A DNA stretch of 64,000 nt from the NCBI GenBank assembly GCA_950097015.1, contig CATNEN010000001.1:21576001-21640000 (forward strand), written 5' to 3'. Positions 11,839 through 62,181 of this stretch are shown here, piece after piece. Each line of letters begins with the position of its first letter. Within the stretch, counting starts at the first letter, position 1. Source of the DNA: Macrostomum hystrix (Eukaryota > Animalia > Platyhelminthes). Below the pieces are notes generated by a model. The model worked only from the letters and a program-made list of their open reading frames with translations, was not told the origin of the DNA and did no database searches. The position numbers and the translations under genes are program-made.

Positions 11839-12135
11839 GAGGTTGTAGCCTAGTGGTTAGGGCGTCGGACTCACGACTTGAAGGTCGGGGGTTCGATTCC
11901 CGACTCCACTGGAACAATTTGCGTCCTTTAGCAAGACACTTAACTCTGCATTGCTTCAGTTCACCCAGCTGTTAAATGGGTACCAGCATCAGCTGGGATA
12001 ATTGAAGGTGGGTGTGGCGTCCCCCCAGTCCGTGGACTGAACAGCTGTACGCAGGCTTCAGAGGCGCCGCGCATAAGCTGCGGCTGTGCTGTTGGCTGCA
12101 CATCTGACCCAATTGGTGCAGGTGTAATCAATACC
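11839..12135 (+). mobile_element. SINE family A, full length (~295 bp), tRNA head plus CORE-like central domain
   Basis: A and B boxes; nearly identical to 34191-34505; central GCAAGACACTTAAC...TCAGTTCACCCAGCTGTTAAATGGG. Confidence 0.9.
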
Positions 12136-27000: not shown

Positions 27001-28195
27001 ATCTTAATGATCACAAGCAGATCCCAATGATCCTCAGCAGATACCAATGATCCTCAGCAGATCCCGGTGATCCCCAGCAGATCCTAATGATCCTCAGCAG
27101 ATCCCAATGATCCTCAGCAGATCCCAATGATCCCCAGTAGATCCCAATGATCCCCAGCAGATCCTAATGATCACAAGCAGATCCCAATGATCCTCAGCAG
27201 ATCCCAATGATCCTCAGCAGATCCCAATGATCCCCAGTAGATCCCAATGATCCCCAGCAGATCCTAATGATCCTCAGCAGATCCCAATGATCCCCAGCAG
27301 ATCTTAATGATCCCCAGTAGATCTTAATGATCACAAGCAGATCCCAATGATCCTCAGCAGATACCAATGATCCTCAGCAGATCCCGGTGATCCCCAGCAG
27401 ATCCTAATGATCCTCAGCAGATCCCAATGATCCTCAGCAGATCCCAATGATCCCCAGTAGATCCCAATGATCCCCAGCAGATCCTAATGATCACAAGCAG
27501 ATCCCAATGATCCTCAGCAGATCCCAATGATCCCCAGTAGATCCCAATGATCCCCAGCAGATCCTAATGATCCCAAGCAGATCCCAATGATCCTCAGCAG
27601 ATCCCGGTGATCCCAGCAGATCCCAATGATCCCCAGCAGATCCTAATGATTCTCAGCAGATCCCAATGATCCTCAGCAGATCCCAATGATCCCCAGTAGA
27701 TCCCAATGATCCCCAGCAGATCCTAATGATCACAAGCAGATCCCAATGATCCTCAGCAGATCCCAATGATCCCCAGTAGATCCCAATGATCCCCAGTAGA
27801 TCCCAATGATCCCCAGCAGATCCTAATGATCCTCAGCAGATCCCAAGGATCCTCAGCAGATCCCAATGATCCTCAGCAGATCCCGGTGATCCCCAGCAGA
27901 TCCTAATGATCCCAAGCAGATCCCAATGATCCTCAGCAGATCCCAATGATCCTCAGCAGATCCCAATGATCCCCAGTAGATCCCAATGATCCCCAGCAGA
28001 TCCTAATGATCACAAGCAGATCCCAATGATCTTCAGCAGATCCCAATGATCCTCAGCAGATACCAATGATCCTCAGCAGATCCCGGTGATCCCCAGCAGA
28101 TCCTAATGATCCCCAGCAGATCCTAATGATCCTCAGCAGATCCCAATGATCCTCAGCAGATCCCAATGATCCCCAGTAGATCCCGATGATCCTCT
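24048..28195. repeat. 4.1-kb satellite, 20-bp unit (AGATCCCAATGATCCTCAGC) built from two 10-bp GATCC subunits
   Basis: About 200 copies with recurring variant blocks. Confidence 0.98.
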
Positions 28196-34190: not shown

Positions 34191-34505
34191 GAGGTTGTAG
34201 CCTAGTGGTTAGGGCGTCGGACTCACGACTTGAAGTTCGGGGGTTCGATTCCCGACTCCACTGGAACGATTTGCGTCCTTTAGCAAGACACTTGCTAAAG
34301 CATTGCTTCAGTTCACCCAGCTGTTAAATGGGTACCAGCATCAGCTGGGATAATTGAAGGTGGGTGTGGCGTCCCCCCAGTCCATGGACTGAACAGCTGT
34401 ATGCAGCCTTCAGATGCGCCGCGCAATAGCTGCGGCTGTGCTGTCGGCTGCACATCTGACCCAATTGGGGCAGGTGTAATCAATTATTATTATTAATTAT
34501 TATTA
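34191..34505 (+). mobile_element. SINE family A, full length with (ATT)n tail
   Basis: Near-identical to 11839-12135; possible TSD TACAACAAT on both flanks. Confidence 0.9.
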
Positions 34506-37412: not shown

Positions 37413-40400
37413 CTACTTTGAAGGCTTGTTCAGCAACTCAAGAATCAGGTGCAGTTTCTGTCCTTGTTCCTCCAGCTGTTGCTGCAGTTTCTTCTGCTCA
37501 CAATGCGCATCTCTAGTGAGCTCCTCCTTCACCTTGTCCATCTCAGCCTCGAAGAAGGCTCCTAAGGCGCTGGAGTCGCTGCGGTTCCGTTCGACCCCAC
37601 GACGCAGCTTCGAACGACAGAGACGCAGCTGCTTGGCTTGATAGGTCAGGTAGGCTCTGTAGCCTTCTGGATATGCGGAGAACGAGTCATCGAGATGCCA
37701 CCACGATGGCTGATGCTGCAAGTTTTTAAAGGTGATGTTTTAAGTACACCTGTTCTACATGTATCGCTGGCTTGAGTAGTCCTCAGAGAATGTGGGAGCA
37801 TGTTAATTACCTGTCCTGAGTTCAATGACGACACGGAGGCGTGCACCTTGTTGTACTGCTTGACACACCTTCGCGCTCTCCAGAGCAGGAGGTAGATGTA
37901 GTGCAGACAGGACAGCGGAGGCGGCAGCGGACTCACCGTGGAATACTCGAGAAGCATCCTATAGGTTCAGTGAATGATCATGTTTATAGTCGATTGCTCT
38001 TTACTTGTTTCTACTCGCATTCACAAAAATATTAGTAACTAATCTGTAAAATGTCTTTACCGGTATCGATTCCTGCGCCAGATGGCCACACACTTGACAT
38101 CCATGACAGCCACTCGCATGCTGAACAAGGCAATCAGTAGATTCACCAGCACAATGTTCACCACCAGCAGGAATAGGAACACCAGGTACTTGCTGAATGC
38201 CAAATAGCCAGTGACTGCAGCGCAATCAAAGTTTCCAGCTCTCTCCGTGGCATTGCACACATCGAATTCGGCCTTGGCGAAGTCTCCGAACATCAGGTGC
38301 AACGGAATCACGAACACGTGCTTGAACACCGCTTTGAAGTCTCTCGTCACCGAGCTCAGCAGAATCGGGAAGTTTAGCGTTGCATAAAACACACCGAAGG
38401 CAATTATAATTACCACAGCAAAGTTGAAGAACGGCCAGAAGTCTTTGTACAGCAGGCTGAGGAACATGGAGATCTTGGCGCCAGTCACTCTGAAATAGTT
38501 GTACAGGCTGACTAGGCGGAATGCACAGAACAGGAAGGACATGCCCAGAACGCCCTGGCAGGCGTACAAATATTCCTTGTCAAAGCTTTGCTGTCCGATG
38601 AGTTTGAGAATGAGGCCAGTCCACAGTAGCATAATGGCAATCAGATCAACATAGGTGAGGCCGTGTGTGAAGTTTCTGCAGACACTCCTGCCAGTTGTAA
38701 AGAACACCTCGCGCCACTCGCGTATTGTGGCGAGCTGGTTGAACCAGTGCAGCGTGTGCGATAGAGCACACAGCCACATGGCTACGTCGGCTTCCATGTG
38801 GATCATTGTTCGTCCAAAGTCAAGAACGTACCAGGCGAAGAAGCCTAGAAACAGGAACCAGTAGGTGGATGCCAGAATGAACTTCACTCTGACGGTGCAG
38901 CCGCGGCATGACCCGCAGCCGGAGGCGCTTTGACTCCCTGTCAGCCAACCTGACTGGCTGACATCCTGCCCATCAGCTTCGGGCCTCCAGGGAAGCGCAG
39001 GCGGAAGGTTCCAGTAGTGCGTGACAAGCTTGCTGATGCACTCTGTTCCAAACAGCTCAACTGAGTCGACAACGTCCACCATCTCCATCACGCTGACGAA
39101 CTCCAGCGGACAATCTGTTTGTCTTTTTTCTCGGGTGTTGAGGCATTGTGGGTTCAGGAACATTGGTCCGCGAACACCATCAGTATCGAAAAAGCTAGCG
39201 GTCAGGTATCTAAGAAGGAGCTGCCTTTCACTTTCTGAAGCGCTTGAGTACAGCTGCTCCAGCACGTTGATTAAAATGTTTAGCGCCTGGGTCTTTGCAC
39301 TGAGCAGGTGCTCGAGCTTTCCTTGCCTTAGCTTTAACTTTAGTTTGAGCTGGATTAGAAGGTGAAGTGTCTTAGGTATGATGTCAAACTGCGGCAGCAT
39401 AGCCAGCTCAGACAGCAAGTTGGTTCGGCTAAAGAATACAGCAAAATCGATCAGCGAGGCTTTCGGATGGTTAATCAGTATCGGTCGAATGATTTCGTTA
39501 GTGAGGAACTGCTCAAATGGCTCACTATTTGTGAGTAGCATGACCTGCAAGTTGCTGATCACTCGGGGACTCATGTCAGTTTTGATAAAGCCCGCAGCAA
39601 CGAGATCGAGAAGAATCTCAGCCGAGTCCAGTTCCAAAGCTCTCAGAAGCCAATGCATCTGAGCTGATTTTCTCTCCATCGATTTACTTTTATTTATTTC
39701 GTTTTCTGATCGGCTTTCGTCAATTTTGTCATCTGTGCACACCAGCAGCGGTCCATTGCTCAGTGCCAGCCGGCTGAGAGCGGTGGACCTGTCCCGGAGC
39801 TGAAGAGCTCTCTCCAGTGGGTCAACCAAAGCCAGCAGGTCCTTCAAGTCCACACCGGCAGATGTCGAAGCATTGATCAGCGACTGCAACTCGCCAGCAG
39901 AGCAGGCAAAGTCAACACAGGTTTCTCCATTCGCTGTCACATCTGTTAGGTTACAACCGTTGCTGAGCAGGAACCGGATGTTCCCTTCGTGTCCGGCTTG
40001 ACAGGCCAGGTGAAGACAGGTGGCTCCGCACAGGTCGCCTGACATCACGCGAAGCGTCGTCAGCTGATCTGGCTGCGCGTTACTCAATAGACTCAACTCG
40101 TCCAGAATCGATTCGAGCTCGTATCGGCAAGAGAAAATGTGAACCGCGTGAAGACCTTCCGAGTTAGAGAGCAGCCTCTGAAATATTGACTTCAAATCCG
40201 AACCACTTAGTCTCGCAAGAACGCATTTCAACGTATCTTGTTGCAGGTGGGTTCCGAGCAGACAGTTTCTTAGGTAGGCATTCTCTAGGCTTGGGTCAAC
40301 CTGAGCCTTGTGAATGAGGCTGAGCACAGTACTAGCGAACTTCTCCAAGTCAAAGTCGAGGCGGCTGTCTCGTGAGTCGCTGGTCAGAAACAGGGCGTGC

Positions 40401-40546
40401 AAAAGAGTGTTCCCGCTGCTATCCAGTTGAGTGGCCCAGCCTGGATTCGCCAGGCTTCGATCGTCCAGTGCCGAGAAATTCTTCGACTTGCAAGCGTCGA
40501 ACATGTCTGACCCTGAGCTGCTGCAATCGGCGCTTGACTTCGTCAT
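37413..40546 (-). CDS. Ankyrin-repeat TRP cation channel, short paralog, 3 exons: 40546-38061, 37958-37811, 37715-37413 (~978 aa)
   Basis: Ankyrin motifs (GNTLLHAL, GATCLHLACQAG), six hydrophobic segments, S6 NIVLVNLLIALF, TRP helix IWRRNRYRMLLEYSTVSPLPPPLS, C-terminal coiled coil; 2937 nt in frame. Confidence 0.88.
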
Positions 40547-41602: not shown

Positions 41603-44600
41603 TCAGCCCTGTCGCAACAGGCCAATGATGGTGTCGAGCTTGGCGTCCAACTCTTTAATTTTGCGGCGCTGCCGTCTCAGGCGGGCCGCTGTCTTTCGAG
41701 AGCTAGCTTCTGCATCGGCAGCTGCTGTTGGCTCGATAACTGAAGCTGCAGCCGAACGAATGTCCGCGGACAATTTCGCTTCAAGAGCTCGGAGCTTATC
41801 GTCAATAAGGGCCTCCTGTACGACGTTCTGAAAGCGACTCTCAGACTGCTGCTGCTGTTGCTGTTGCTGAACCCGAGTGCCCTGGGCCAGAATCTCCTCA
41901 ACTTTGTCCAACCGGCCGCCCAGCCTCTGAGCAGCCTCTTCCTGCCTGTCAGTGAGGATCGCCAGTCTAGTGTCAAGCCGCTCCTGCAGCGTCTCCAGCA
42001 GGTTGCCCGTGTGCGCTTTCAAGCCGTCAAAGTCGCTTCGGTTCCGAGTGACCTCTCTGGTGAGTTGTGGCCGGCAGCGCCTGAAGCGAGTGGCTTGAAA
42101 CTTCAAGAAGCTCACGTACTCGTCTGGGTAGTCGCGCTCGTTGAGCCACCACTCCTTAAAGCGGTGTTTGTTGTTAATGTAGTTATGAACATCTGTAGAA
42201 GCCCAGGGTCAGAGCTTCTGACTGACTGTTGCTAAAATGGGTACTAGCATCAGTTGGGGTTGAAATTCGGGTGGCCACGGACTAGACTAGACAAGCAGAA
42301 CTACTATAGTATTGATAATTATTTATTACGCCTGTCCCAATAGGGCAAGATGACCAGCCGACAGTTCATACGCAGCGATTACGCGGCGCATCTGTAGATA
42401 TGAAGGCTACGTACGGCTGTTCAGTCCATGGACAAAAATTGTTCTATGGAAATCGGGAATCGAACCACCGACCTTCAAGTCGAGAGTCAGACGCTCTAAC
42501 CATTTGGAAGGGTCGAAGGTCTAAGGATCTAAACATATATTTAGAGTTTGGACTCACATTTTTGTCCGTAGGCTTCACCCGCTTCTGTCTGACCAGCCGC
42601 ACAATGGTCAGAATAATCTCCGTGATGAAGGACAACGGTGGTGGCACCGGTCCCAGCGTCTGGTACTCGCGCAGCATCTCAAAGTAGGTCCTGCGCCAAA
42701 TGCCCAGTGCCCGACTGTCCATTCGGCTGACTCGGAGGCTGAACAGCGCGATAAGCAGATTCACCATCACTATGTTTACCAGCAGCAGAAAAATGAACAG
42801 GAGAAAGTTCTTGAACCAGCTGAGACCTTGCGGGTTGGCGACTTTGCCAATTGTTTGATTGGCAGTCAATGAGGATGACTCAAGTGAAATTTTGTCAAAG
42901 TTTGTAAACAGCAAATTGAAGGGCAGAGTGAATACCTGGAGGAATACCTTCAGGCTATAGTCGCTGCTGTTTACCTCTGCCGGAGGCGAATATATCACAG
43001 GAAACAGTAAGTTAAAGAACAGAACTCCGAAGACGTAGAAAATTACTAGGATGATAGCTAGGAATGGTAGCAGGTCTAGGATTATTAGGCTGCTCAGCAT
43101 TGAGATCACTGGACCCGTTCTTTCGTGGTAGCTTAGAAAAGCTACCGATCGGAATCCCCACAGGGTAAAGGATGTTGTGAGCATCATCTGGCAGGCGTAG
43201 GTTGTGATCTCATCTTCGGTAACGTAGAAAATGATCCACTTCCAGATCAGGCCAATCCAGAGAAACAGAATGGCGAAGAAGTCGAAGAAGTTACTGGCGT
43301 CCTCAAAGTACTTTGGAAGTCTCACTGTTCGCTTGCCTACATAGAATTCTTTGAAACTTCTTCTGCGCCAAATATCCGTGACTTCCTGCACGGTGAAGGA
43401 AGCCGCATACAGCGATAAGACAATATCCGGTACTACAGTCTGAAAAGTCTTTGTAAAGTCGAGGATGTACCAAGCGGCATAGGCCAGGAAGATGACAAAG
43501 GACACATGATGAATGTAATACTTCACTCTGGGCGTGAACGGATTAGTGAATCGCTTGCTCTTGCCGCTAGATTCGGTGAATTGTGGCCGCGGGTGCCAGG
43601 CCTTCTTAGCCGCATTGTGTAGGCATTCCGTCTCTATGATCTCGCTGCAGTCGGACTCTTCCACCATGTCAAACAGAGAAATGTACTCGAACGATGTCTT
43701 GTCGGCGTTTTCACCGCATCGGCATGGAAACAATGGGCCAGGATTCTGTCCTTCATTGTCACGCAGATCACCGCGGATATAGTCAATGAACAGTGTCTTT
43801 TCGTCCTCACTAGCGGACACGTAAAGCTCATCTAGGGCGTTGACAACAATGCAAGATATTTTAGCCTGCAGCTCTTTCAGCTGCTCATGCCTGCCCTGTC
43901 TCTGAGCGATCCTGGGTTTCAGATAGACCAGCAGGCTGATACAAGCTGGTATCAGCTCGAATTGGCGCGTCAAGACGAGGTCGGGCAAGATTTCGGCCTT
44001 GTCAAAGAATGCCGCTATGTCGATTATGGAGAGCTCAGAGATCACACTGAAGAGCTTCTGGTTCATAAACTTGTCTGGATTCGTAAAGTAGCGATTACTG
44101 TCGTATCCTTCTGAGCGAAGCTTCTGGACCAGATACATCGGCAGAGATCTTTCCGTGTCGGAAGTCACCAGATTCAAGCTTAACGCGCTTCTCAAAATGC
44201 GCGATGAGTCTAACTCGAGAGCCCTGAGCAGAACGTCCCAGTCCGTGTGTCCGGTTTCCTTTTTACTTTTGGTTGCCACAGCCTCCTGAAGCTTCTCAGC
44301 GACGCTGGCCGAGGAGCCCCGCCGTTTTTCATGTTTGTCGTCGCACAAGCTTTGTGAATCTCTCTGGCCGTCCATCCTCAACGACTCGTGGGCGATTGAC
44401 GCAATTAGTTGACGCGAATTCGACCGATCGGGAAGTTTGAGAGCCCGATTAGCTGGGTCCACAAGACGCCACAAGTCGGTCCTTGTCAAGCCCTTCTGGC
44501 ACTCTTCAGCAACTTCTAGCACTTCGTCAAGTTTCCCCTTCTCGTAGGCGTAGTCGATGCAGGACAGGCCAGTGTGGGTCACTGTTTGCAACATCAGCCC

Positions 44601-46499
44601 CTGCCGAAGTAGATATCGAATATTATCTTTGTTGCCCGATTCGCATGCAAAGTGCAGGCAAGTGGCTCCCTTGTTGGCATCCATGGTGACCGTGAGGCGC
44701 AGAAGGTCTGGCACTTGCAGCTCGGACAGTTTCGCCAGCGGCTTCACAATCTCCCTGAGCTTGTATCGGCTGGCAAATGCGTGGACCGCATGGAGACCGC
44801 TGGAGTTATTCAGCAACTGCTTGAACATCTTCTTGGAATTTTCACTCGTCATCGCTTTCATCAAGATTAGCGCGAGGCAACGTTCGAGCATAGTAGTACC
44901 ATGCAGACAGTTCTGGCCGATGTTGTTTTCCGTAAGCAGCCTGACCCCGGCACCAACTAGCGTCATCATCATCGACAAGAACTCTTGGATCTCGTTGTCA
45001 GTGTGACGATGCTTCTCGCTCTGAAACAGCGAGTGCAGAAGAGTGTTTCCGTCGCCATCTACTTTCAGAATTTCAGCCGGGGCCATTTTGAGCAGGTGGC
45101 TGGCCGCTGAGGCACTACACGAGCTGACAGCTAAGAACAGTACCGACTGCTTCTTGTTGTTCTGCCAGCTGAGGCACCACCAGCCGACAGCTTGGACAGC
45201 TGTCAGCACTATGTCAATCTTGTTGTCGCTGCGAACTGCTTCATGCAGGCAGGTATTTCCGTCCTCGTCGTGAAGGCTTAAACAGTCGGAGTTGGCAGCC
45301 TGCACGAGCTTCTTAGAGACATCCGTGCTGCATTTGAGCACGGCATGATGCAGCACTGACTGCTTTCTGGCATTTTGCCAGGTCAGACACTCGGCTCCAA
45401 CTACGTCCAAGGCGGTCAAAATGATCTCTTCCTTGCTGCTATCGATCATGTGCAAGCAAGTGCCCCCAGTTTCGTCTTTCAGACTTAGGACCTCAGAACT
45501 AGCGAGGGTGACAAGTTTCTTCGCAACCTCCACGCTGCAATCGAACAATTTTCTCTGGAGCACTGACAGCTTCCTGTAGTTCTGCCAGCCGAGACAAACT
45601 GGTCCGCCTGCCTCTATGGCTGCAAAAATCACGGCATCGTCGGGGTTCTGCGCCGCATAATGCGCCCAGGTGTTGCCCTCATCGTCTTTGAGAGCTAGAA
45701 CCTCGGAACCAGACATTGCGAGTAGCAGTTGAGCAGTTTCGGCGTCACAGTTGGCCAAGGCTTCACTTAGTACAGAACAGCGTTTCGCATTTGTCCAACC
45801 GAGACATTGCTGGCCGATCACTTCAATTACTGGCAGAATCGCATTTTTGTTGCGCCTGTTTCTGCCAGCCCAGTGACCGCAAGTGTCACCGTTGGTGTCC
45901 TTCAACTCCAAAGTCTTGCGTTTGACCTGCGTGAGGTACGGGCCGAAGGTATTGCAAGTATGGTAGCGGGAGGCAAAGTGCAGCGGTGTCAGCTTAGCTT
46001 TGTCTGCGTCCGCTAGGCACTCGATGCCGATTAAGTTGACTAGCAACTGAAGAGTCACTTGACCTTTGGAGTGCATTGCTGCATAGTGGGCTGCGGTTCT
46101 CTTACTGCGGGGATCGCGATCCAGTGAGACAGTGGCACCGCCGGAGCTCGCCAGCTCCTTCAACAGCTGGTTGGCTGCATCGAACTGAAAGCTGCGAGTC
46201 AGGCGCAGCAGGCGCTGCGCTGGCGGGAGGGCCTGTTGCTCACCGTCGGGGCCCAGAACAAACTCCGCTCTGGTGTCCGCGTTGGCGTCATTCTCTGGTG
46301 ACTCGTTAGAGTCCGAGTCGTCCTTCCAGCAATCTTCACTGTCATATTCTTCGTCTGTCTCCGCCGCTACCTTACCGGCGTCTTCCGAATGTGCTGACGA
46401 AGAACTGACATCGTCGTCGTCTTGATCATCACTAGAGAGCTCCGATTCGTCACCGGAGAGTCGTTGACCCTTCTTGAGACTGGCTTTATCCGCTGACAT
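41603..46499 (-). CDS. Ankyrin-repeat TRP cation channel, long paralog, exons 46499-42558 and 42154-41603 (~1497 aa; extra upstream exon(s) possible)
   Basis: Acidic N-terminus, many ankyrin repeats, 6 TM segments, NIVMVNLLIALF, IWRRTYFEMLREYQTLGPVPPPLS, coiled coil. The phase-0 intron matches the paralog's last intron, but its AAG acceptor is weak. An in-frame candidate exon at ~46636-46701 may extend the N-terminus. Confidence 0.85.
42325..42502 (-). mobile_element. SINE family A, internally deleted, in TRP intron
   Basis: Minus strand TGGTTAGAGCGTCTGACTCTCGACTTGAAGGTCGGTGGTTCGATTCCCGA joined to GTCCATGGACTGAACAGC. Confidence 0.8.
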
Positions 46500-47472
46500 A
46501 ATCAAAGCCCGTCCTTTTCTCCTGCTGAATAGCAAACGCAGGTAGGTGTTTTTCAGATAGAATAAAATACAAAAGGCTACAATACTATTTTTACAGAGAC
46601 CTTTAAATAAAAAGACGAGTTAAAAAATAACCTACTTTTCGGAAGAAATGAGCTTCTCAGGGACTCTTGCCTTGTTGATGATCTTGAAGTACTTCTTCGC
46701 TTCTAAATATTAGTACTACTAAGCTTAAAAATATTTAATAATCAAGCACTAATTTATTTGGAAACTACGAGTATTATAGGGCCAGTTGTGTTGCAAACTG
46801 GAGGTGAGGGGTTAGGTACTGCGGGGTTGGCCTGTTTCTACAGCGCATTGTTCTCCATCGTACACGATTCTCGCTGGCACGTAGCTTTCCTAGAAAGAAA
46901 CAAAAAATTTCTTTTTAACGTCTAGTTACTGAAGATGTTTCAGTGTCACAAAATGCTAAACCCTGGAATGAGTCTGCTTGGACATTAGCCGAATATTTTT
47001 TGCCGCCAAGTAAAATAAAAAATGAAAAAATATTTTCTACACAGCGAATTTGATTCCATTGTTAGGAATGGAGCAGCCTTTTATTCATTGCCCGCAATCC
47101 TAGTATAGCGTGGCCATCAAATTAGTCTATTCTTTAACCCTTCTGCTTGCATACTCAGACAGAACTTTGAACTGGCAGTTGCTAGGCTGGACCTTAAACT
47201 TCACAGTTAAATAGATCTGTTCCAAACGTGTGCATGAATCTTTTCGAATTCAATTGAAGCATGCACTGGACTCGATCTCAATCTCAATCTCAATCGATGT
47301 CAACTATTCTCAGGACACGGGAGAGATGAGTCACTGGAGACATGAGACACGGGACAAGGAGAGACACGAGACACGGACAGATGATACATGAGAGAAATGA
47401 GACACAGGAGAGATTTGACACGAGAGAGATGAGACGTCTGTAATTGAAAAGGCAGTATCTTCACCCACTGTG

Positions 47473-47610
47473 AAAAAGGTGGGTGTCGTCTTAGAGCAGG
47501 CGATTATCACCGAATCGAACCGCACAGTGTAGGATGTTCATTCGACCGGACAGCAACGGACCAAAGGTTACTGCTAGCTCAAGACCACCTCGCCTGCTCT
47601 GTGGCCCACC
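47473..47610 (-). ncRNA. Candidate structured small RNA, copy A
   Basis: GGTGGGCCAC-AGAGCAGGCGA...TCGCCTGCTCT-AAGACGACACCCACC-TTTTT; loop motif TTGAGCTAGCAGTAAC. Confidence 0.65.
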
Positions 47611-47682
47611 GCTTGAGCTGCGCACCGGCTGTGTTGATTATTTTAATGCAGCCAGAGTCGCCCATGACCATCGCCCATCGCA

Positions 47683-48281
47683 TACTCAGCAACAGCTAAA
47701 CCCCCCCAACTCACGCTGTCACACGGGCACAAAAGTTAAGCAATGTCTTTAATTCTAGTCTCAGTATCGTGTGTAGGAACCACGAGCATGCAAAAGTGCC
47801 ATGACTCGTCGTGGCATCCTGATCACCAGCCGGTTGATGAACTCTTGGGGCAGCTGCTGCCATGCATTCAGCACCGCCAGTCGCAACTGTTCAGCATTCT
47901 GTGGGTCATCCTGCTGAACTCTTCGCTTTACAAAGTCCCAGACATGCTCGATGGGGTTCATGTCTGGAGACTTTGACGGCCAGTTCAATGTGCGAATGCC
48001 GAGCTGCTCCTTCAGCAGCTGCACGTGTGCTGCTCGATGTGGCGCAGCGTTGTCGTCTTGAAGCATGCAGTTCTGCGGGCCGCCAAAGGTTGTCGTAGCA
48101 AATGTCGTAGCAACCAGTGGGTTGAGTTGCGCCATGCACCCCCTCCCCAAATCCCCATGCCGCACTTTGCGCTCGCGTCTGGCGGCGGCAGCCTTCACAC
48201 ATTTCTGAGTCACCGATGGCATACAAAACTTTTGGGCCGTGTGACAGCGTGAGTTGGGGAGGGTTTAGCTGTTGCTGAGTA
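47683..48281 (-). mobile_element. Internally deleted Tc1 (DD34E) transposon, ~600 bp
   Basis: ~55-bp TIRs (TACTCAGCAACAGCTAAACCC..CAACTCACGCTGTCACACGG..CAAAAGTT) with TA at the ends; retains QDDNAAPH...WPSKSPDMNPIEHVW with 34 aa between D and E. Confidence 0.93.
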
Positions 48282-48677
48282 TAGATTACGCAGGTGCAGA
48301 CAAATTTGGACTTCTCATCCACAGTACACTACTGACAGATGAAAGTGAGTAGGATTCAATGTAAATTTTGATGGCTGCTTTTCCAACGAAAAATATCACT
48401 TGAAATAGAATATTTGAGAGTAATAGCTTATAGTAGGATAGTGCCAAAAATCTCGAGCAGAAGAACTGAAGAATTTCCTGAGTCGTCCTGTCGGAAACGT
48501 TGGCGCGTACGACTTCAGCACCAGGGAGCTGATGTACCTTAATTACCCGCATACCTCAACGACGTCTCCGTTCGGCAGAGCTAGTGCAGGGGCAGTGCCA
48601 AAAGTTTGTCTCAGGAGCCATGTGACATTTCAGAAAAAAGTCTCACAAAATGTTAATAAAAAGCAAAGCGGGCATCT

Positions 48678-48722
48678 AAACTGGGTGCCGATTCGGAGCA
48701 GGGAATGTTGCCGGGTCCGACT
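48678..48722 (-). pseudogene. Small RNA copy B, 3' half only
   Basis: Plus strand CTGGGTGCCGATTCGGAGCAGGGAATGTTGCCGGGTC matches the other copies; the rest is replaced by the 38-bp satellite. Confidence 0.65.
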
Positions 48723-48751
48723 AGACTAACTAAATTTGCTCGCATGTACAT

Positions 48752-51700
48752 AGCACCAAATAAACAACACAGTACCCATTAAAGTGCACAGCACCGAATA
48801 CACCACACAGTACCCATTAAAATGCACAGCACTGAATAAACCACACAGTACCCATTAAAGTGCACAGCACTGAATTAACCACACAGTACCCATTAAAGTG
48901 CACAGCACCGAATAAACCACACAGTACCCATTAAAGTGCACAGCACCGAATACACCACACAGTACCCATTAAAGTGCACAGCACCAAATAAACAACACAG
49001 TACCCATTAAAGTGCACAGCACCGAATACACCACACAGTACCCATTAAAATGCACAGCACTGAATAAACAACACAGTACCCATTAAAGTGCACAGCACTG
49101 AATAAACCACACAGTACCCATTAAAGTGCACAGCACCGAATAAACCACACAGTACCCATTAAAGTGCACAGCACTGAATAAACCACACAGTACCCATTAA
49201 AGTGCACAGCACCGAATAAACCACACAGTACCCATTAAAGTGCACAGCACCGAATAAACCACACAGTACCCATTAAAGTGCACAGCACCGAATAAACCAC
49301 ACAGTACCCATTAAAGTGCACAGCACCGAATAAACCACACAGTACCCATTAAAGTGCACAGCACCGAATAAACCACACAGTACCCATTAAAGTGCACAGC
49401 ACTGAATAAACCACACAGTACCCATTAAAGTGCACAGCACCGAATAAACCACACAGTACCCATTAAAGTGCACAGCACCGAATAAACCACACAGTACCCA
49501 TTAAAGTGCACAGCACTGAATAAACCACACAGTACCCATTAAAGTGCACAGCACCGAATACACCACACAGTACCCATTAAAGTGCACAGCACTGAATAAA
49601 CCAAACAGTACCCATTAAAGTGCACAGCACTGAATAAACCACACAGTACCCATTAAAGTGCACAGCACTGAATAAACCACACAGTACCCAATAAAGTGCA
49701 CAGCACTGAATAAACCACACAGTACCCATTAAAGTGCACAGCACCGAATAAACCACACAGTACCCATTAAAGTGCACAGCACTGAATAAACCACACAGTA
49801 CCCATTAAAGTGCACAGCACTGAATAAACCACACAGTACCCATTAAAGTGCACAGCACCGAATACACCACACAGTACCCATTAAAGTGCACAGCACTGAA
49901 TAAACCACACAGTACCCATTAAAGTGCACAGCACCGAATAAACCACACAGTACCCATTAAAGTGCACAGCACCGAATAAACCACACAGTACCCATTAAAG
50001 TGCACAGCACCGAATACACCACACAGTACCCATTAAAGTGCACAGCACTGAATAAACCACACAGTACCCATTAAAGTGCACAGCACCGAATAAACCACAC
50101 AGTACCCATTAAAGTGCACAGCACCGAATAAACCACACAGTACCCATTAAAGTGCACAGCACCGAATAAACCACACAGTACCCATTAAAGTGCACAGCAC
50201 CGAATAAACCACACAGTACCCATTAAAGTGCACAGCACCGAATAAACCACACAGTACCCATTAAAGTGCACAGCACCGAATAAACCACACAGCACCCATT
50301 AAAGTGCACAGCACTGAATAAACCACATAGTACCCATTAAAGTGCACAGCACTGAATAAACCACACAGTACCCATTAAAGTGCACAGCACTGAATAAACC
50401 ACACAGTACCCATTAAAGTGCACAGCACTGAATAAACCACACAGTACCCATTAAAGTGCACAGCACTGAATAAACCACACAGTACCCATTAAAGTGCACA
50501 GCACCGAATAAACCACACAGTACCCATTAAAGTGCACAGCACTGAATAAACCACACAGTACCCATTAAAGTGCACAGCACTGAATAAACCACACAGTACC
50601 CATTAAAGTGCACAGCACCGAATAAACCACACAGTACCCATTAAAGTGCACAGCACCGAATACACCACACAGTACCCATTAAAGTGCACAGCACTGAATA
50701 AACCAAACAGTACCCATTAAAGTGCACAGCACTGAATAAACCACACAGTACCCATTAAAGTGCACAGCACTGAATAAACCACACAGTACCCATTAAAGTG
50801 CACAGCACTGAATAAACCACACAGTACCCATTAAAGTGCACAGCACTGAATAAACCACACAGTACCCATTAAAGTGCACAGCACCGTATAAACCACACAG
50901 TACCCATTAAAGTGCACAGCACTGAATAAACCACACAGTACCCATTAAAGTGCACAGCACCGAATAAACCACACAGTACCCATTAAAGTGCACAGCACCG
51001 AATAAACCACACAGTACCCATTAAAGTGCACAGCACCGAATAAACCACACAGTACCCATTAAAGTGCACAGCACCGAATAAACCACACAGTACCCATTAA
51101 AGTGCACAGCACCGAATAAACCACACAGTACCCATTAAAGTGCACAGCACCGAATAAACCACACAGTACCCATTAAAGTGCACAGCACTGAATAAACCAC
51201 ACAGTACCCATTAAAGTGCACAGCACCGAATAAACCACACAGTACCCATTAAAGTGCACAGCACCGAATACACCACACAGTACCCATTAAAGTGCACAGC
51301 ACTGAATAAACCAAACAGTACCCATTAAAGTGCACAGCACTGAATAAACCACACAGTACCCATTAAAGTGCACAGCACTGAATAAACCACACAGTACCCA
51401 TTAAAGTGCACAGCACTGAATAAACCACATAGTACCCATTAAAGTGCACAGCACTGAATTAACCACACAGTACCCATTAAAGTGCACAGCACTGAATAAA
51501 CCACACAGTACCCATTAAAGTGCACAGCACTGAATAAACCACACAGTACCCATTAAAGTGCACAGCACTGAATAAACCACACAGTACCCATTAAAGTGCA
51601 CAGCACCGAATAAACCACACAGTACCCATTAAAGTGCACAGCACTGAATAAACCACACAGTACCCATTAAAGTGCACAGCACTGAATAAACCACACAGTA

Positions 51701-51978
51701 CCCATTAAAGTGCACAGCACCGAATAAACCACACAGTACCCATTAAAGTGCACAGCACTGAATAAACAACACAGTACCCATTAAAGTGCACAGCACCGTA
51801 TAAACCACACAGTACCCATTAAAGTGCACAGCACCGTATAAACCACACAGTACCCATTAAAGTGCACAGCACTGAATAAACCACACAGTACCCATTAAAG
51901 TGCACAGCACCGTATAAACCACACAGTACCCATTAAAGTGCACAGCACCGAATAAACCACACAGTACCCATTAAAGTG
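48752..51978. repeat. 3.2-kb satellite, 38-bp unit (CACAGTACCCATTAAAGTGCACAGCAC(C/T)GAATAAACCA), ~85 copies
   Basis: Highly homogeneous tandem array without unique spacers. Confidence 0.98.
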
Positions 51979-52167
51979 ATAAGAAGTTTTTCACTGTCAA
52001 CTGGGAAAAGCTATTGCTCGATGCAGATCGAAATGCATCGAGTTAAAGATCGAACATCAGTCTTACCTATTAGGTATTCTCCAGACAATTAGAAAACCTA
52101 CTAATTATTGGGCAAATACATATTTCAGAAAAAATGAGTTTGACCAAAAGCAAAGCTAGCTGGTGGC

Positions 52168-52292
52168 AAAAGTGGGTGTCAATTTAGAGCAGGGAATTTT
52201 GCCGGGTCGGACCAGACGACATGTCCAGCCGACCCGACAGAGTGAGGAGTTGCTGCTGGCTCAAGCCCAAACTCCCTGCTCTGCGGCCCACC
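52168..52292 (-). ncRNA. Candidate structured small RNA, copy C (Y/sbRNA-like architecture)
   Basis: GGTGGGCCGC-AGAGCAGGGAG-TTTGGGCTTGAGCCAGCAGCAACTCC-[hairpin TGTCGGGTCGG/CCGACCCGGCA]-TTCCCTGCTCT-AAATTGACACCCAC-TTTT. Confidence 0.75.
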
Positions 52293-52315
52293 GGTTGAGT
52301 TAAGCACGGACTCAG

Positions 52316-52411
52316 CTATTTGAATCCAATTGAAGCTAATCTCGCAAGCGGCTCAGCTAGTGCTGCGTAAATTTTCGTCCCCGTGCGCATCATGCTACTG
52401 AGTGTGAGTAG
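52316..52411 (-). promoter_or_regulatory. Putative external Pol III promoter of copy C (TATA-like, PSE-like, CTACT..AGTAG dyad)
   Basis: Motifs conserved at equivalent distances next to copies C, E, F, G, H while the spacers diverge. Confidence 0.55.
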
Positions 52412-52696
52412 GCTTCGCTTTTGTTTGTGTCTTGGTCAAGCATTTACTACAGCCTCGAAACTTCACAAAAGCACAGATATGAGAAGAAACAGTGTTTTAA
52501 TACCTGTGACGAATCCGAATCGTCATTTATTTGTGCTTCGCTAAATAGTTTTAATGTTATGGCTTACCAAAAATCCTTCTACTCAACATTTTTATCTGAG
52601 AATGAGCAGATCTACGACGCTTGGTGACTGAGATAAGATTTCATTAAATTTCAGATGTAAAAATCACGAAAAAATAGAGAAGCAAGGATCGACCAT

Positions 52697-52770
52697 AAAA
52701 AGTTGGTGCCGGTTTGGCAAGTGAATGCTAGAAATTGCTTTTGGCTCAAGTTCAGATATCCCGGCCCACC
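52697..52770 (-). pseudogene. Small RNA copy D, internally deleted
   Basis: Retains GGTGGGCCG, TTGAGCCAAAAGCAATT and a terminal T5, but lacks the upper stem and variable hairpin. Confidence 0.55.
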
Positions 52771-52936
52771 TACTCAAATTCGTGCTTTCCGTCATTCTAC
52801 GCTCTTGATTCAAATTTTACGAGCTACAATGAAAACCAATTCTCAGAGCAGTCAATCTGCAAAAGTACTAGTAAAAGTAAATGTGCATCATGTTCACGGA
52901 AGGCTGTCAGCTGCCAGGGCAAGAAAAAGCTGCAGC

Positions 52937-53062
52937 AAAAGTGGGTATCGAATTGGAGCAGGGAATTTTGCCGAGTCGAACCGGACAGGGCGTCCAGCCG
53001 ACCCGATAGCAATTAGGAGTTGCTGTTGGCTCAAACCCAGAGTCCCTGCTCCGCGGCCCACC
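52937..53062 (-). ncRNA. Candidate structured small RNA, copy E
   Basis: Upper stem GGAGCAGGGA/TCCCTGCTCC (compensatory A-U to G-C), motif TTGAGCCAACAGCAACTCC, T4 end. Confidence 0.75.
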
Positions 53063-53456
53063 GATTGAGTTTGGCTTCGATTCTACTATTTAGAGGCTTC
53101 AGCTAGTCGATGTATTGCAAGCAGTTTAGCTTTCGCTGAGAAACTGGCGTGATATTTGCTCACTGCACTACTGACACAGAATGATAAGTAGCATTCAACG
53201 TAAATTAAAACAATTACTCGTACTTCGTACTCGTATTCAAAATTCATCAAGGTACCCAGTTAAGCTACACTGTTTAGTAATTGGACATTTAGTTAATACC
53301 ACAGACAATGCATAATCTGTGGCTAATGCCGTGTATTCAAGCATATATGATCTGAAGTATGTGAATGTAAAACTGTTTCAAAAAGTCTCTCGACTCTCAT
53401 TAATAAGAAGTTCCTTTCCTAAAATTCAGGGAGGATAATCGATCAATTCAGCTGGC

Positions 53457-53584
53457 AAAAGTGGGTGTCGGGTTAGTGTGGGGGAGTAGCCACAAGTCCC
53501 AGCAGTTTTTACCGGGACTTAGCGTGGCAAAGGAGCGGAATTGCTTTTGGCTCAAATCCAATATCCCCCACACTGCGGCCCACC
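53457..53584 (-). ncRNA. Candidate structured small RNA, copy F (divergent subfamily)
   Basis: Upper stem AGTGTGGGGGA/TCCCCCACACT and a different variable hairpin (GCCAC..AAGTCCC/GGGACTTGTGGC), same termini and loop motif. Confidence 0.75.
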
Positions 53585-53915
53585 AACACAAGTCTGTGCT
53601 CAAACTGCTATTTATGCTGCTCAAATGGTACATTGTGCAATAGTTGATTACAAAGCATATTGTTTAAAGCATAAATTTGTAATGACACTACTTCTATCTC
53701 GTCCACCAGTAGTGTGTCATGTATATTTACAGCGTTTTTCATTGTCAACTGGGAAAAGCTATTGCTCGATGCAGATCGAAATGCATCGAGTTAAAGATCG
53801 AACATCAGTCTTACCTATTAGGTACTCTCTAGACAATTTGAAAACCGACTAACCATTGGGCAAAGACATGTTTCAGAAAAAATGAGTTTGACCAAAAGCA
53901 AAGCTAGCTGGTGGC

Positions 53916-54040
53916 AAAAGTGGGTGTCAATTTAGAGCAGGGAATTTTGCCGGGTCGGACCAGACGACATGTCCAGCCGACCCGACAGAGTGAGGAGTTG
54001 CTGCTGGCTCAAGCCCAAACTCCCTGCTCTGCGGCCCACC
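53916..54040 (-). ncRNA. Candidate structured small RNA, copy G (appears identical to copy C)
   Basis: Lies in a ~425-bp duplication of 51987-52410. Confidence 0.75.
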
Positions 54041-54360
54041 GGTTGAGCTGAGCACGGACTCAGCTATTTGAGTCCAATTGAAGCTAATCTCGCAAGCGGC
54101 TCAGCTAGTGCTGCGTAAATTTTCGTCCCCGCGCGCATCATGCTACTGAGTGTGAGTATAGGCTTATTTACAGCGTTTTTTATTTTAATGCATGGTGAAA
54201 TGCATGATATTATAAAAGATCGAATACCAGTGCTAATTTGTAGATGTTTTCCATTTGGACAAAAATAGTATATGTTACTGTACATTTGCTTAAAACGTTT
54301 ATAATTTATGTGACAGCTGCTAATAGGCTCACAAAAAGCAAAGCAAAGCAAGCTAGCGGG

Positions 54361-54463
54361 AAAAGTGGGTGTCAATTTAGAGCAGGGAATGTTGCCGGGT
54401 CGACCCGACATAGAGAGGAGTTGCTGCTGGCTCAAGTCCAAACCCCCTGCTCCGCGGCCCACA
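54361..54463 (-). ncRNA. Candidate structured small RNA, copy H (short variable hairpin)
   Basis: Upper stem GGAGCAGGGGG/TTCCCTGCTCT needs three G-U pairs that form only on the minus strand; T4 end. Confidence 0.72.
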
Positions 54464-54684
54464 GGTCGATTCGGACTCAATTCTATGATATATAGATGCT
54501 GTGTAGTATGTTGTGCAAGTGGTTTAGATTTCGCGAAGGACTTGTGCGTTTTTAGACATGTCATACTACTTGCTTGTAAAGATGAGTAGACTGCGCTTGT
54601 TTCATTTTTTAATATATATCCTCTCTTACATTTTTGTAAAAGCGTTTTTTATTAAGTCATCTAAGTTGTCATAGATTTTGTCCG

Positions 54685-54822
54685 AAAAGATGCGATTTAG
54701 CATAAGGAACTAGCCATATACCCCGACTGTCACCATGCATGGTGACGACGGGGACACATGTGCGGCAAGAAGCGGAATTGCCTTGGCTCTCAAAACCATA
54801 ATCCCTGACGCTGCGACCCACC
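54685..54822 (-). pseudogene. Small RNA copy I, degenerate (F-like subfamily)
   Basis: GGTGGGTCGC start, GAGCCAAGGCAATTCCGC motif, long variable hairpin; broken terminal stem and an internal T4. Confidence 0.55.
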
Positions 54823-55412
54823 AGTTACAACTAAAGAAATAACTTCCTATTATGCTTGTATTACCCGCAATTGTGTATTAAACTAGTAGCTTGCCGTCGG
54901 CAATGCCGGATTTTCTGAGTGTTAACTGTCCACAAAATCTATTAAAATATATTAAATTCTAAATTTAAACAGAATCATCTCTTCAATTTTTAGCAGCATT
55001 TTTTACTGGTAAAAATATCAACTTACTCGTAGAATAACAAGGTAGTTTGTTTCGTTTTTAGCGTATCGATCTCTATAAAAATATTTTGTTGTAAATGGTT
55101 ACAAGTCTGAGAATTTCTGTGCAAGTTTAGATTTTTAAGTTCTTAGAAGTTAGCATATGTGCTAGGATTTTTCCACAAAAATCGTTCATCATTCTATCGA
55201 CTGCTTAAAGCTAAATTTTATTAGCAGCTTCAATCTGTTTCGCTTCAATTAGGCCTAAGATTAATTTTTAAGCTGGTGACAATTGTCGTATTTCTTCATT
55301 TTTAGCCAGTAGGCCTAACTGGGTCATCGTCAAGTATTATTAAGCCTAGGCCCACCCTATTTATTAGTCAACTATTATTAATTAATTGTTCTCTTTGCTT
55401 CTGCTTAGCAAT

Positions 55413-57833
<2,421 letters not shown>

Positions 57834-60975: not shown

Positions 60976-62181
60976 CTGAAGGGTCAGGGGAGTTGGCTAT
61001 GACTGCTCAGACACACAAACACCTGAAGGGTCAGGGGAGTTGGCTATGACTGCTCAGACACAAACACCTGACGGATCAAGGGAGTTGGCTATATGACTGC
61101 TCAGACACACAAACACCTAAAGGATCAGGGGGTAGACTATGACTGCTCAGACACACAAACACCTGAAGGATCAGGGGGGTAGACTATGACTGCTCAGACA
61201 CACAAACACCTGAAGCATCAGGGGGGTAGACTATGACTGCTCAGACACACAAACACCTGAAGCATCAGGGGGTAGACTATGACTGCTCAGACACACAAAC
61301 ACCTGAAGCATCAGGGGGGTAGACTATGACTGCTCAGACACACAAACACCTGAAGCATCAGGGGGTAGACTATGACTGCTCAGACACAAACACCTGAAGG
61401 GTCAGGGGGTAGACTATGACTGCTCAGACACAAACACCTGAAGGGTCAGGGGGTAGACTATGACTGCTCAGACACACAAACACCTGAAGCATCAGGGGGT
61501 AGACTATGACTGCTCAGACACACAAACACCTGAAGCATCAGGGGGTAGACTATGACTGCTCAGACACACAAACACCTGAAGGGTCAGGGGGTAGACTATG
61601 ACTGCTCAGACACACAAACACCTGAAGCATCAGGGGGTAGACTATGACTGCTCAGACACACAAACACCTGAAGCATCAGGGGGTAGACTATGACTGCTCA
61701 GACACACAAACACCTGAAGCATCAGGGGGTAGACTATGACTGCTCAGACACACAAACACCTGAAGCATCAAGGGGTAGACTATGACTGCTCAGACACACA
61801 AACACCTGAAGCATCAGGGGGTAGACTATGACTGCTCAGACACACAAACACCTGAAGCATCAAGGGGTAGACTATGACTGCTCAGACACACAAACACCTG
61901 AAGCATCAGGGGGTAGACTATGACTGCTCAGACACACAAACACCTGAAGCATCAGGGGGTAGACTATGACTGCTCAGACACACAAACACCTGAAGCATCA
62001 GGGGGTAGACTATGACTGCTCAGACACACAAACACCTGAAGCATCAAGGGGTAGACTATGACTGCTCAGACATACAAACACCTGAAGCATCAGGGGGTAG
62101 ACTATGACTGCTCAGACACACAAACACCTGAAGCATCAGGGGGTAGACTATGACTGCTCAGACATACAAACACCTGAAGGG
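60976..62181. repeat. 46-bp minisatellite (CTGAAGCATCAGGGGGTAGACTATGACTGCTCAGACACACAAACAC)n, ~26 copies
   Basis: Directly visible tandem array. Confidence 0.97.

Follow-up and report, generated by a model that had tools for sequence, protein, structure and literature searches.

A 64,000-nucleotide (nt) stretch of the genome of the flatworm Macrostomum hystrix (GenBank assembly GCA_950097015.1, contig CATNEN010000001.1, positions 21,576,001 to 21,640,000; here called the window) contains a cluster of short elements that very likely constitute a small multigene family for a structured noncoding RNA. The predicted RNA is ~103 to 138 nt long and would be read off the minus strand, and the enzyme involved is most probably RNA polymerase III, using an external promoter. 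Judged by sequence, the family is a new, lineage-restricted set of structured small-RNA genes of the same architectural kind as Y and vault RNAs. A sequence-only reading of the cluster had proposed that these elements specify a functional RNA on the minus strand, and our analysis backs that proposal with two additional paralogs located elsewhere on the contig, a tree-aware test of covariation, the consensus folding energy, and promoter and terminator motifs.

A family of 11 copies at two loci

We searched the complete M. hystrix assembly (220,453,370 bases in 42 contigs) for members of the family; the coordinates of elements given below are those of the 64-kb window, which belongs to contig 1. 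Nine copies of a 103- to 138-nt element (A to I) lie on the minus strand between positions 47473 and 54822, six of them intact and three decayed. A covariance model trained on the six complete window copies scores these same copies at 103 to 148 bits (E values of 1e-21 to 1e-31), and a search with it identified two further intact members on the same contig, 9.9 Mb away. These additional copies, J and K, lie within 11,745,800 to 11,747,400 of contig 1, where the RNA would be read from the plus strand; they score 87 and 83 bits, respectively, and bring the family to 11 copies (8 intact and 3 decayed) at two loci in the 220-Mb genome. A rescan of the whole genome with a second covariance model and a motif search returned nothing beyond J and K, and motif counts in the window are higher than in all shuffles. 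One motif match beside a vault RNA gene was examined and is no family member, and a single scan of metagenome contigs gave one match, by chance, within a GC-rich bacterial gene.

Two types of a long, variable hairpin are found among the copies. The type 2 hairpin (GCCRC...UCCCNG...CNGGGA...UGUGGC) is common to F, I, J, and K, and the other type is common to A, B, C, E, G, and H. Since each hairpin type has its own set of copies, we distinguish two subtypes, which are interleaved along the cluster. A near-invariant segment also differs by subtype (GGGCUUGAGCCAGCAGCAACUCC versus GGAUUUGAGCCAAAAGCAAUUCC), and compensatory changes recur inside the subtype hairpins (helices 5 and 6). An earlier suggestion that the hairpin had been replaced independently in F and I was not borne out, as the hairpins of these two copies are homologous and the same type is also present in J and K.

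Among the intact type 1 copies of the window, copy A occupies positions 47473 to 47610 (138 nt, 103.5 bits), has an intact body followed by a T5 terminator, and carries the upper stem AGAGCAGGCGA/UCGCCUGCUCU. Copies C (52168 to 52292; 125 nt, 147.6 bits, fold z-score of -5.2) and G (53916 to 54040; 125 nt) are nearly identical owing to the recent duplication of a block of at least 300 bp, with 97% identity. Copy E spans 52937 to 53062 (126 nt, 135.9 bits), and copy H, in which the variable hairpin is shortened, spans 54361 to 54463 (103 nt, 109.2 bits) and has the upper stem GGAGCAGGGGG/UUCCCUGCUCU, including three G-U pairs. Copy F (53457 to 53584; 128 nt, 115.1 bits, fold z-score of -5.7) is intact and of type 2, with the upper stem AGUGUGGGGGA/UCCCCCACACU.

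Terminal stem, upper stem, and terminator are all retained in the intact copies, whereas the decayed copies, which are also on the minus strand, are each missing one or more of the three. Copy B (type 1; 48676 to 48733) consists of the 3' half only, because it is cut by a 38-bp satellite array (48752 to 51978; 85 units, 97% identity) that interrupts the cluster and is itself context outside the RNA genes; its terminator is degraded to TTTAG. Copy D, a type 2 remnant (52694 to 52772; 28.2 bits), has undergone a large internal deletion that took most of the upper stem and the hairpin. Copy I (type 2; 54682 to 54822; 21.9 bits) still pairs in its upper stem, has lost the 3' strand of the terminal stem through a 5-nt deletion, and contains an internal T4 run. 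The deletion and the internal T4 indicate that it is probably dead, and copy I is thus probably a pseudogene.

Compensatory changes preserve the predicted fold

The outermost part of the predicted minus-strand fold is a 6-bp terminal stem (GGUGGG/CCCACU), which is invariant save for its first pair. Proceeding inward, this stem is followed by a 1x3 internal loop, in which a C on the 5' side lies opposite A-Y-A on the 3' side, and then by a tentative 2-bp helix, whose first pair (C-G) is invariant and whose second pair is G-C, G-U, or A-C. A 1x4 internal loop separates this helix from a covarying upper stem of 10 to 12 bp. The junction beyond the upper stem bears the long subtype-specific hairpin and a short hairpin that displays the nearly invariant sequence UUGAGCCANNAGCAA. 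Two folds of the short hairpin are possible, either UUGG/CCAR with a 7-nt loop or GGR-N-UUG/CAA-N-UCC with a 9-nt loop, and decisive covariation was found for neither. Fold z-scores on the minus strand range from -1.8 to -5.7.

To quantify covariation, pairs were counted in an alignment of eight copies fitted to the covariance model, with the upper stem modeled as 12 pairs. Seven of these 12 pairs have changed on both sides and 2 are unvarying, and 94% of the upper-stem cells are paired. Over the whole structure, 92% of cells are paired, versus 36 to 51% after the 3' partners are slid by 1 to 3 columns. Double changes are present in 15 pairs of the model-fitted alignment and in 10 pairs of a MAFFT alignment, and the observed covariation score was matched by none of 500 shuffles. 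We also performed a tree-aware simulation (20,000 runs) in which the tree, the changes per column, and an intact ancestral pair were held fixed. This null yields 72 ± 4.5% pairing and 2.2 ± 1.4 double-changed cells in the upper stem, compared with the observed 94% and 12, and neither observed value was reached in any of the 20,000 runs.

Traced by lineage, these changes amount to at least nine independent double substitutions in the upper stem, which occurred position by position on several branches and include exchanges of G-C for C-G and of A-U for U-A, for which no wobble intermediate is possible. Copies J and K carry a fifth version of the stem (AGUCUGAGGGA/UUCCUCAGGC) that differs from the common version at five pairs and is still paired. 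The sequence-only reading had quoted five stem pairs as evidence that the upper stem varies yet stays paired, and all five are present as written on the minus strand; its conclusion that selection acts on RNA structure is also supported, in that the observed pairing or covariation exceeds the slide, shuffle, and tree-aware controls alike.

The minus strand is the likely sense strand of the predicted RNA

Five independent lines of sequence evidence (the consensus fold, the T runs, the TATA-like box, the PSE-like motif, and the lack of such signals on the other side) agree in supporting the minus strand as the strand that the RNA is read from. The nature of the imperfect pairs fits as well. On the minus strand, non-Watson-Crick positions across the whole structure comprise 30 G-U versus 6 A-C in six lineages, and 13 versus 3 when only the terminal, 2-bp, and upper stems are considered, a count that is partly biased toward the minus strand because the structure was derived on it. 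Copies A and J, for example, have A-C as the second pair of the 2-bp helix, and J has it at the first pair of the upper stem as well. The idea that mismatches are G-U on the minus strand and A-C on the plus strand is therefore correct for the stems originally quoted in its support and fails as an absolute rule, given the six A-C positions found on the minus strand overall.

Folding energy points in the same direction. The consensus fold has an energy of -40.2 kcal/mol on the minus strand versus -29.1 kcal/mol on the plus strand, a gap of 11 kcal/mol. Folds of single copies separate the strands weakly: the minus strand is the more stable in six of seven, by a margin of 0.4 to 7.7 kcal/mol for the intact copies.

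The placement of T runs is also strand specific. A T4 or T5 run directly follows the terminal stem in all eight intact copies, and none of them has an internal T4 on the minus strand; on the plus strand, six of the eight contain an internal T4, and no T run lies beyond the element. This agrees with what had been noted for the window copies, namely, that the minus strand of A, C, E, F, G, and H is free of internal T4 runs and that the plus strand of C, E, F, and G contains T4. Nothing comparable to the TATA-like box, proximal sequence element (PSE)-like motif, or T run described here was found on the opposite side of the element.

Promoter and terminator motifs resemble those of RNA polymerase III genes

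Every intact copy is preceded by a TATA-like box (TAAATAG or TATATAT) at position -31/-32, the 3' end of which lies 23 to 24 nt upstream of the GGUGGG start (26 nt in copy A). Comparator genes in the same genome place the TATA box at -30 (U6) and at -31 to -33 (vault RNA), and F, J, K, and one vault RNA gene share the identical sequence ATAAATAGCAG. We infer transcription by RNA polymerase III from the terminator together with the spacing of the TATA-like box.

U6 and U2 genes of M. hystrix (eight loci in all) share an upstream ACGAAAA(C/G)TAG motif (ACGAAAANTAG) at -75/-74, which is a candidate PSE, and the U6 genes additionally carry TATATATA at -30. A motif resembling this candidate PSE lies upstream of four copies of the family. 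In copy E it is found at -74 with three mismatches (GCGAAAGCTAA, 53126 to 53136), a position equal to that in U6 and U2, and is accompanied by the TATA-like box CTAAATAG (53086 to 53093). Copy H has the motif at -71, also with three mismatches (GCGAAATCTAA, 54524 to 54534), and the TATA box CTATATAT (54488 to 54495). In copies C and G, it is located at -86 with two mismatches (ACGAAAATTTA, at 52368 to 52378 and 54116 to 54126, respectively); the TATA-like boxes of these copies are TCAAATAG at 52316 to 52323 (C) and the sequence at 54064 to 54071 (G). The corresponding boxes of F and I are ATAAATAG (53608 to 53615) and CATAATAG (54847 to 54854). Copy A has no promoter sequence beyond its TATA-like box because the region was replaced by a Tc1-like insertion ~70 bp upstream (~47680).

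The insertion is an internally deleted Tc1/mariner-like transposon (47680 to 48285) with inverted ends of ~45 bp, one (CAGCAACAGCTAAACC...) at 47687 and the other, its complement, at 48262. It holds a 153-amino-acid C-terminal fragment of a transposase on the minus strand (47761 to 48222).

With respect to promoter layout, the family partly resembles U6-type (type 3) RNA polymerase III genes in having a TATA-like box at -31/-30, a T-run end, and, in four copies, the PSE-like motif. It is unlike them in that it has no kinship in sequence or structure with U6, U6atac, 7SK, RNase P, or RNase MRP RNA.

Several points weigh against a polymerase III-transcribed, structure-selected RNA family. A PSE-like motif can be clearly recognized in just four copies, that of C and G lies 11 nt further upstream than the motif of U6, and none was seen upstream of the type 2 copies F, J, and K. 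A TATA box alone cannot name the polymerase, since some U2 genes, which are transcribed by RNA polymerase II, have an A/T-rich box near -29. The alignment used for the pair counts was itself fitted to the model, although MAFFT yields the same upper-stem columns for the window copies. All of the sequences are paralogs from one genome and represent only six independent lineages, such that a test of the R-scape type has low power, and gene conversion between neighboring copies is possible. The 2-bp helix, at whose second pair G-C, G-U, and A-C all occur, is without covariation support, and in copy E it is the plus strand that gives the slightly better fold.

Comparison with Y and stem-bulge RNAs

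No Rfam model matches the cluster at its gathering score, and none matches the region from 46000 to 57000 at an E value of ≤10. Canonical Y, vault, U small nuclear RNA (snRNA), spliced-leader, small nucleolar RNA, and ribozyme assignments were ruled out given the lack of Rfam matches on the cluster. By inspection, the copies have no Sm site, conserved splice donor, or box C/D or H/ACA layout. Integron attC sites, CRISPR arrays, and bacterial repeats were ruled out because the window is eukaryotic, as indicated by its minisatellites, the 220-Mb genome, and intron-type genes.

Two Y RNA candidates of 74 to 75 nt are found on the plus strand of contig 38, at 6466849 to 6466923 and 6797610 to 6797683. 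They score 35.9 and 30 bits, which is below the Rfam gathering cutoff of 38, and are canonical in look: GGCUGGUCCGG...CUUGACCAGCCUUUU with a bulged C, a 9-bp upper stem, a loop that begins UUAAC, and a T4 end. In common with these candidates, the family has a terminal stem, a C left unpaired in the 5' strand, then 2 bp and an asymmetric loop in which the 3' strand has 3 to 5 extra bases, followed by an upper stem of 9 to 12 bp and an oligo-U tail. The ends are also alike, reading GGUGGGCCGCAG...AAAUUGACACCCACUUUU in the family and GGCUGGUCCGGAG...AAACUUGACCAGCCUUUU in Y RNA. Like Y and stem-bulge RNAs more broadly, the predicted RNA is ~100 nt long and has an external TATA-containing promoter, paired ends, and a variable interior, and the general layout of a Y RNA (paired ends, a separate upper stem, and 3' oligo-U) is recognizable in it, with polymerase III assigned from motifs. 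Finally, like the stem-bulge RNAs that exist beside CeY, the copies form a partly tandem multigene family that coexists with a canonical Y RNA.

These likenesses raise the possibility, which we hold only tentatively, that the family is a diverged and expanded branch of the Y RNAs and thus the flatworm counterpart of nematode stem-bulge RNAs. The terminal stem would then bind a Ro60-like protein, or the upper stem would act in DNA replication. Such an origin would refine, and does not exclude, the interpretation of the copies as structured RNA genes. Beyond the similar layout and ends, it is favored by the precedent of nematodes, which have one Ro-bound Y RNA and a larger family of related stem-bulge RNAs (PMC4726728, PMC4450293), and by two TROVE/Ro60-like loci in the M. 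hystrix genome (contig 33, 3756182 to 3757652; contig 38, 33569430 to 33570648). At the contig 38 locus, a von Willebrand A-like segment bearing a DxSxS motif follows, as in the architecture of Ro60, and the two loci suggest two Ro60 paralogs in this one flatworm genome.

Other observations argue against a Y RNA origin. The Y_RNA model, like all other Rfam models, is silent on the cluster even at the relaxed threshold, and the family model scores a Y candidate at 7.6 to 8.3 bits (E value of about 1), no better than it scores a vault RNA gene. The family's 5' strand, GGGCCGC, resembles the Ro60-binding stem of Y RNAs (GGUCCG/UUGACC, with a single bulged C), yet the Y-type Ro-binding register cannot form because the unpaired C faces three bases, A-Y-A. 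The sequence UUGAC is confined to C, G, and H, and the remaining copies have CGAC or CGAU. Stem-bulge RNAs are defined by a UUAYC loop motif and by a 9-bp, G-C-clamped upper stem that contains the motif UG-CA (PMC4450293). Within the family, GUG/CAC is present in copy F only and the sequence of the upper stem varies freely; UUAYC is present in no copy, the sequence past the upper stem being UUUGGGCUUGAG or UUUGGAUUUGAG. Furthermore, the family members are 103 to 138 nt long versus the 74 to 75 nt of this genome's Y candidates, and their interior is a junction with the UUGAGCCANNAGCAA hairpin and a long hairpin, not a pyrimidine-rich loop. The likeness of the family to Y and stem-bulge RNAs does not amount to demonstrable homology.

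Comparison with vault RNAs and a possible RNA contact

Six vault RNA genes are present in the genome, on contig 3 (3139818, 3144755, and 3212080), contig 33 (3636923 and 3637598), and contig 39 (6896976). They score 44 to 56 bits, above the Rfam gathering score, and have a box A, a T-arm-like box B, and TAAATAG at about -31. Repeats of the major vault protein are encoded on contig 37 at 4.18 Mb and on contig 38 at 2.82 Mb.

The family is like vault RNA (RF00006) in its size class (100 to 130 nt), paired ends, TAAATAG box at -31, T4 terminator, and variable center. In contrast to vault RNA, the cluster has no Rfam Vault score and lacks both box A (AGCNNAGCGGTTAC) and a box B in the sense orientation; the box-B-like motif of the family lies antisense. 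Since the canonical Y candidates and the vault RNAs are located elsewhere and the cluster has no Rfam match, the copies represent a third family with paired 5' and 3' ends.

The antisense motif is the invariant hairpin sequence, which on the plus strand reads GGCTCAAGCCC or GGCTCAAATCC, one mismatch off the box B/T-arm consensus GGTTCRANNCC. The T-arm-like part of one vault RNA (contig 33, 3637598 to 3637724) is complementary to the minus-strand RNA over 19 uninterrupted pairs, of which 5 are G-U. We performed duplex scans of the invariant hairpin against U6, U2, the Y candidates, and the vault RNAs, which gave a signal for vault RNA only, with z-scores down to -5.4 (for one paralog, relative to shuffles); full-length duplex scores were uninformative. 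A genome-wide search for G-U-tolerant complements returned 15 matches versus 3 in the control. Three of the 15 are the family itself and 1 is this same vault RNA on contig 33, and a tRNA gene is located at none of the other 11. This complementarity may have arisen by chance or through common ancestry with the orientation inverted, or it may reflect a genuine contact between the two RNAs.

A more speculative proposal, and on balance an unlikely one, is that the copies represent an undescribed third class of polymerase III scaffold RNA in macrostomids, alongside Y and vault RNAs, which may be a sister group to the Y and stem-bulge RNAs or an RNA whose hairpin pairs with vault RNA or tRNA. In the latter case, the invariant hairpin would target the T-arm-like region of these RNAs.

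Alternative explanations

The cluster could in principle be a nonfunctional tandem repeat or DNA palindrome whose complementarity is kept by template switching or gene conversion, an explanation that we consider very improbable. Template switching is able to make several complementary changes at once, the region is repeat rich with many minisatellites, C and G derive from a recent segmental duplication, and 3 of the 11 copies are decayed. However, the non-Watson-Crick positions are mostly G-U on one strand, which a DNA-level process would not favor, and the stem has changed one position at a time, in the nine or more events on several branches described above, and not as one block. The asymmetric loops, ends, TATA-like box, and terminator are kept across the eight intact copies, at loci separated by 9.9 Mb, whereas the spacers diverge, and it is precisely these conserved features that the decayed copies have lost. 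The profile of a dispersed repeat, such as a short interspersed element or a miniature inverted-repeat transposable element, is not seen either: the 11 copies are restricted to two loci in 220 Mb and are arranged in tandem with diverged spacers.

Slightly harder still to sustain is the view that the family encodes an Sm-class snRNA or a spliced-leader-type RNA, transcribed by RNA polymerase II from the shared PSE. The PSE-like motif is indeed common to the family and U2, the genes are arranged in tandem, and macrostomid flatworms trans-splice. Yet there is no conserved Sm site, as the sequences CACUUUUGCC, CACUUUUCCC, and CACCUUUUUCA diverge past the T run, and a conserved GU splice donor is absent from the 5' part. 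The T run abuts the terminal stem exactly, and the TATA-like box is placed as in the U6 and vault RNA genes.

We give the least credence to the reading that the functional strand is the plus strand, on which the element would be a polymerase III gene like those for vault RNA or tRNA and carry its promoter boxes internally, and for which the near match to the box B/T-arm consensus in a hairpin with a 7-nt loop, the weak likeness of TAGAGCAGGG to box A, and the resemblance to the T-arm-like part of one vault RNA gene are outweighed by the internal T4 runs in six of eight intact copies with no T run after and no TATA or PSE upstream, the position of the box-A-like sequence in a covarying stem where it is unconserved, the poorer consensus fold (by 11 kcal/mol) with mismatches that would be A-C, and the silence of the Rfam Vault and tRNA models on the cluster.

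Other features of the window

ARAGORN called no tRNA in the window, and the Rfam tRNA model matches only at 11839 and 34191. These two weak matches (11839 to 11908 and 34191 to 34260, both on the plus strand) score 31.8 and 30.3 bits relative to a cutoff of 29 and are not called by ARAGORN.

Minisatellites are numerous and include a 20-bp unit present 207 times (24048 to 28192) and a 46-bp unit present 26 times (60976 to 62179), along with many others. A palindrome, CTCGATGCAGATCGAAATGCATCGAG, with 85% complementarity over 26 nt, occurs at 52017 to 52042, 53765 to 53790, and 54188 to 54205. It lies ~125 to 170 bp past the 3' ends of C, G, and H, within the duplicated spacer, and is diverged near H.

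Two long single-exon open reading frames are located on the minus strand, at 38057 to 40546 (829 amino acids) and 42444 to 46535 (1,363 amino acids). The only database relatives of the 829-amino-acid frame are Macrostomum lignano proteins (33 to 53% identity), with ankyrin repeats and an ion-channel domain. The 1,363-amino-acid frame, judged by its similar sequence, looks like a paralog of it.

Discussion

The pattern of conservation across the copies, with fixed ends and loops, a helix that appears to be needed only as a helix, and a hairpin that can be swapped, leads us to infer a protein-binding scaffold RNA. The predicted transcript would be made, end in oligo-U, and serve as a ribonucleoprotein scaffold. 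The parts that do not vary, namely, the terminal stem with its loops and the short hairpin, may be binding sites for protein or RNA, the upper stem would be required solely as a helix, and the variable hairpin may confer specificity on each subtype.

Small structured RNAs of flatworms are sparsely catalogued. A survey of schistosomes found no Y or vault RNAs (PMC2770079), and the terms "ncRNA" and "non-coding" are absent from the M. hystrix genome paper (PMC10468722). What is new here is that one free-living flatworm genome contains near-threshold Y RNA candidates and canonical vault RNAs together with an unnamed family of putative RNA genes that shows strong evidence of selection for structure. 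If the family were an ancient sister to the Y and stem-bulge RNAs, the split between those two groups would predate nematodes. The covariance model provides a direct probe for the family in other flatworm genomes. If expressed, the family would add a new ribonucleoprotein RNA to a genus that serves as a model for regeneration and stem cells, and it would offer a test case for how paired-end scaffold RNAs diversify, with fixed protein-binding ends, a helix that is free to vary, and hairpins swapped between subtypes.

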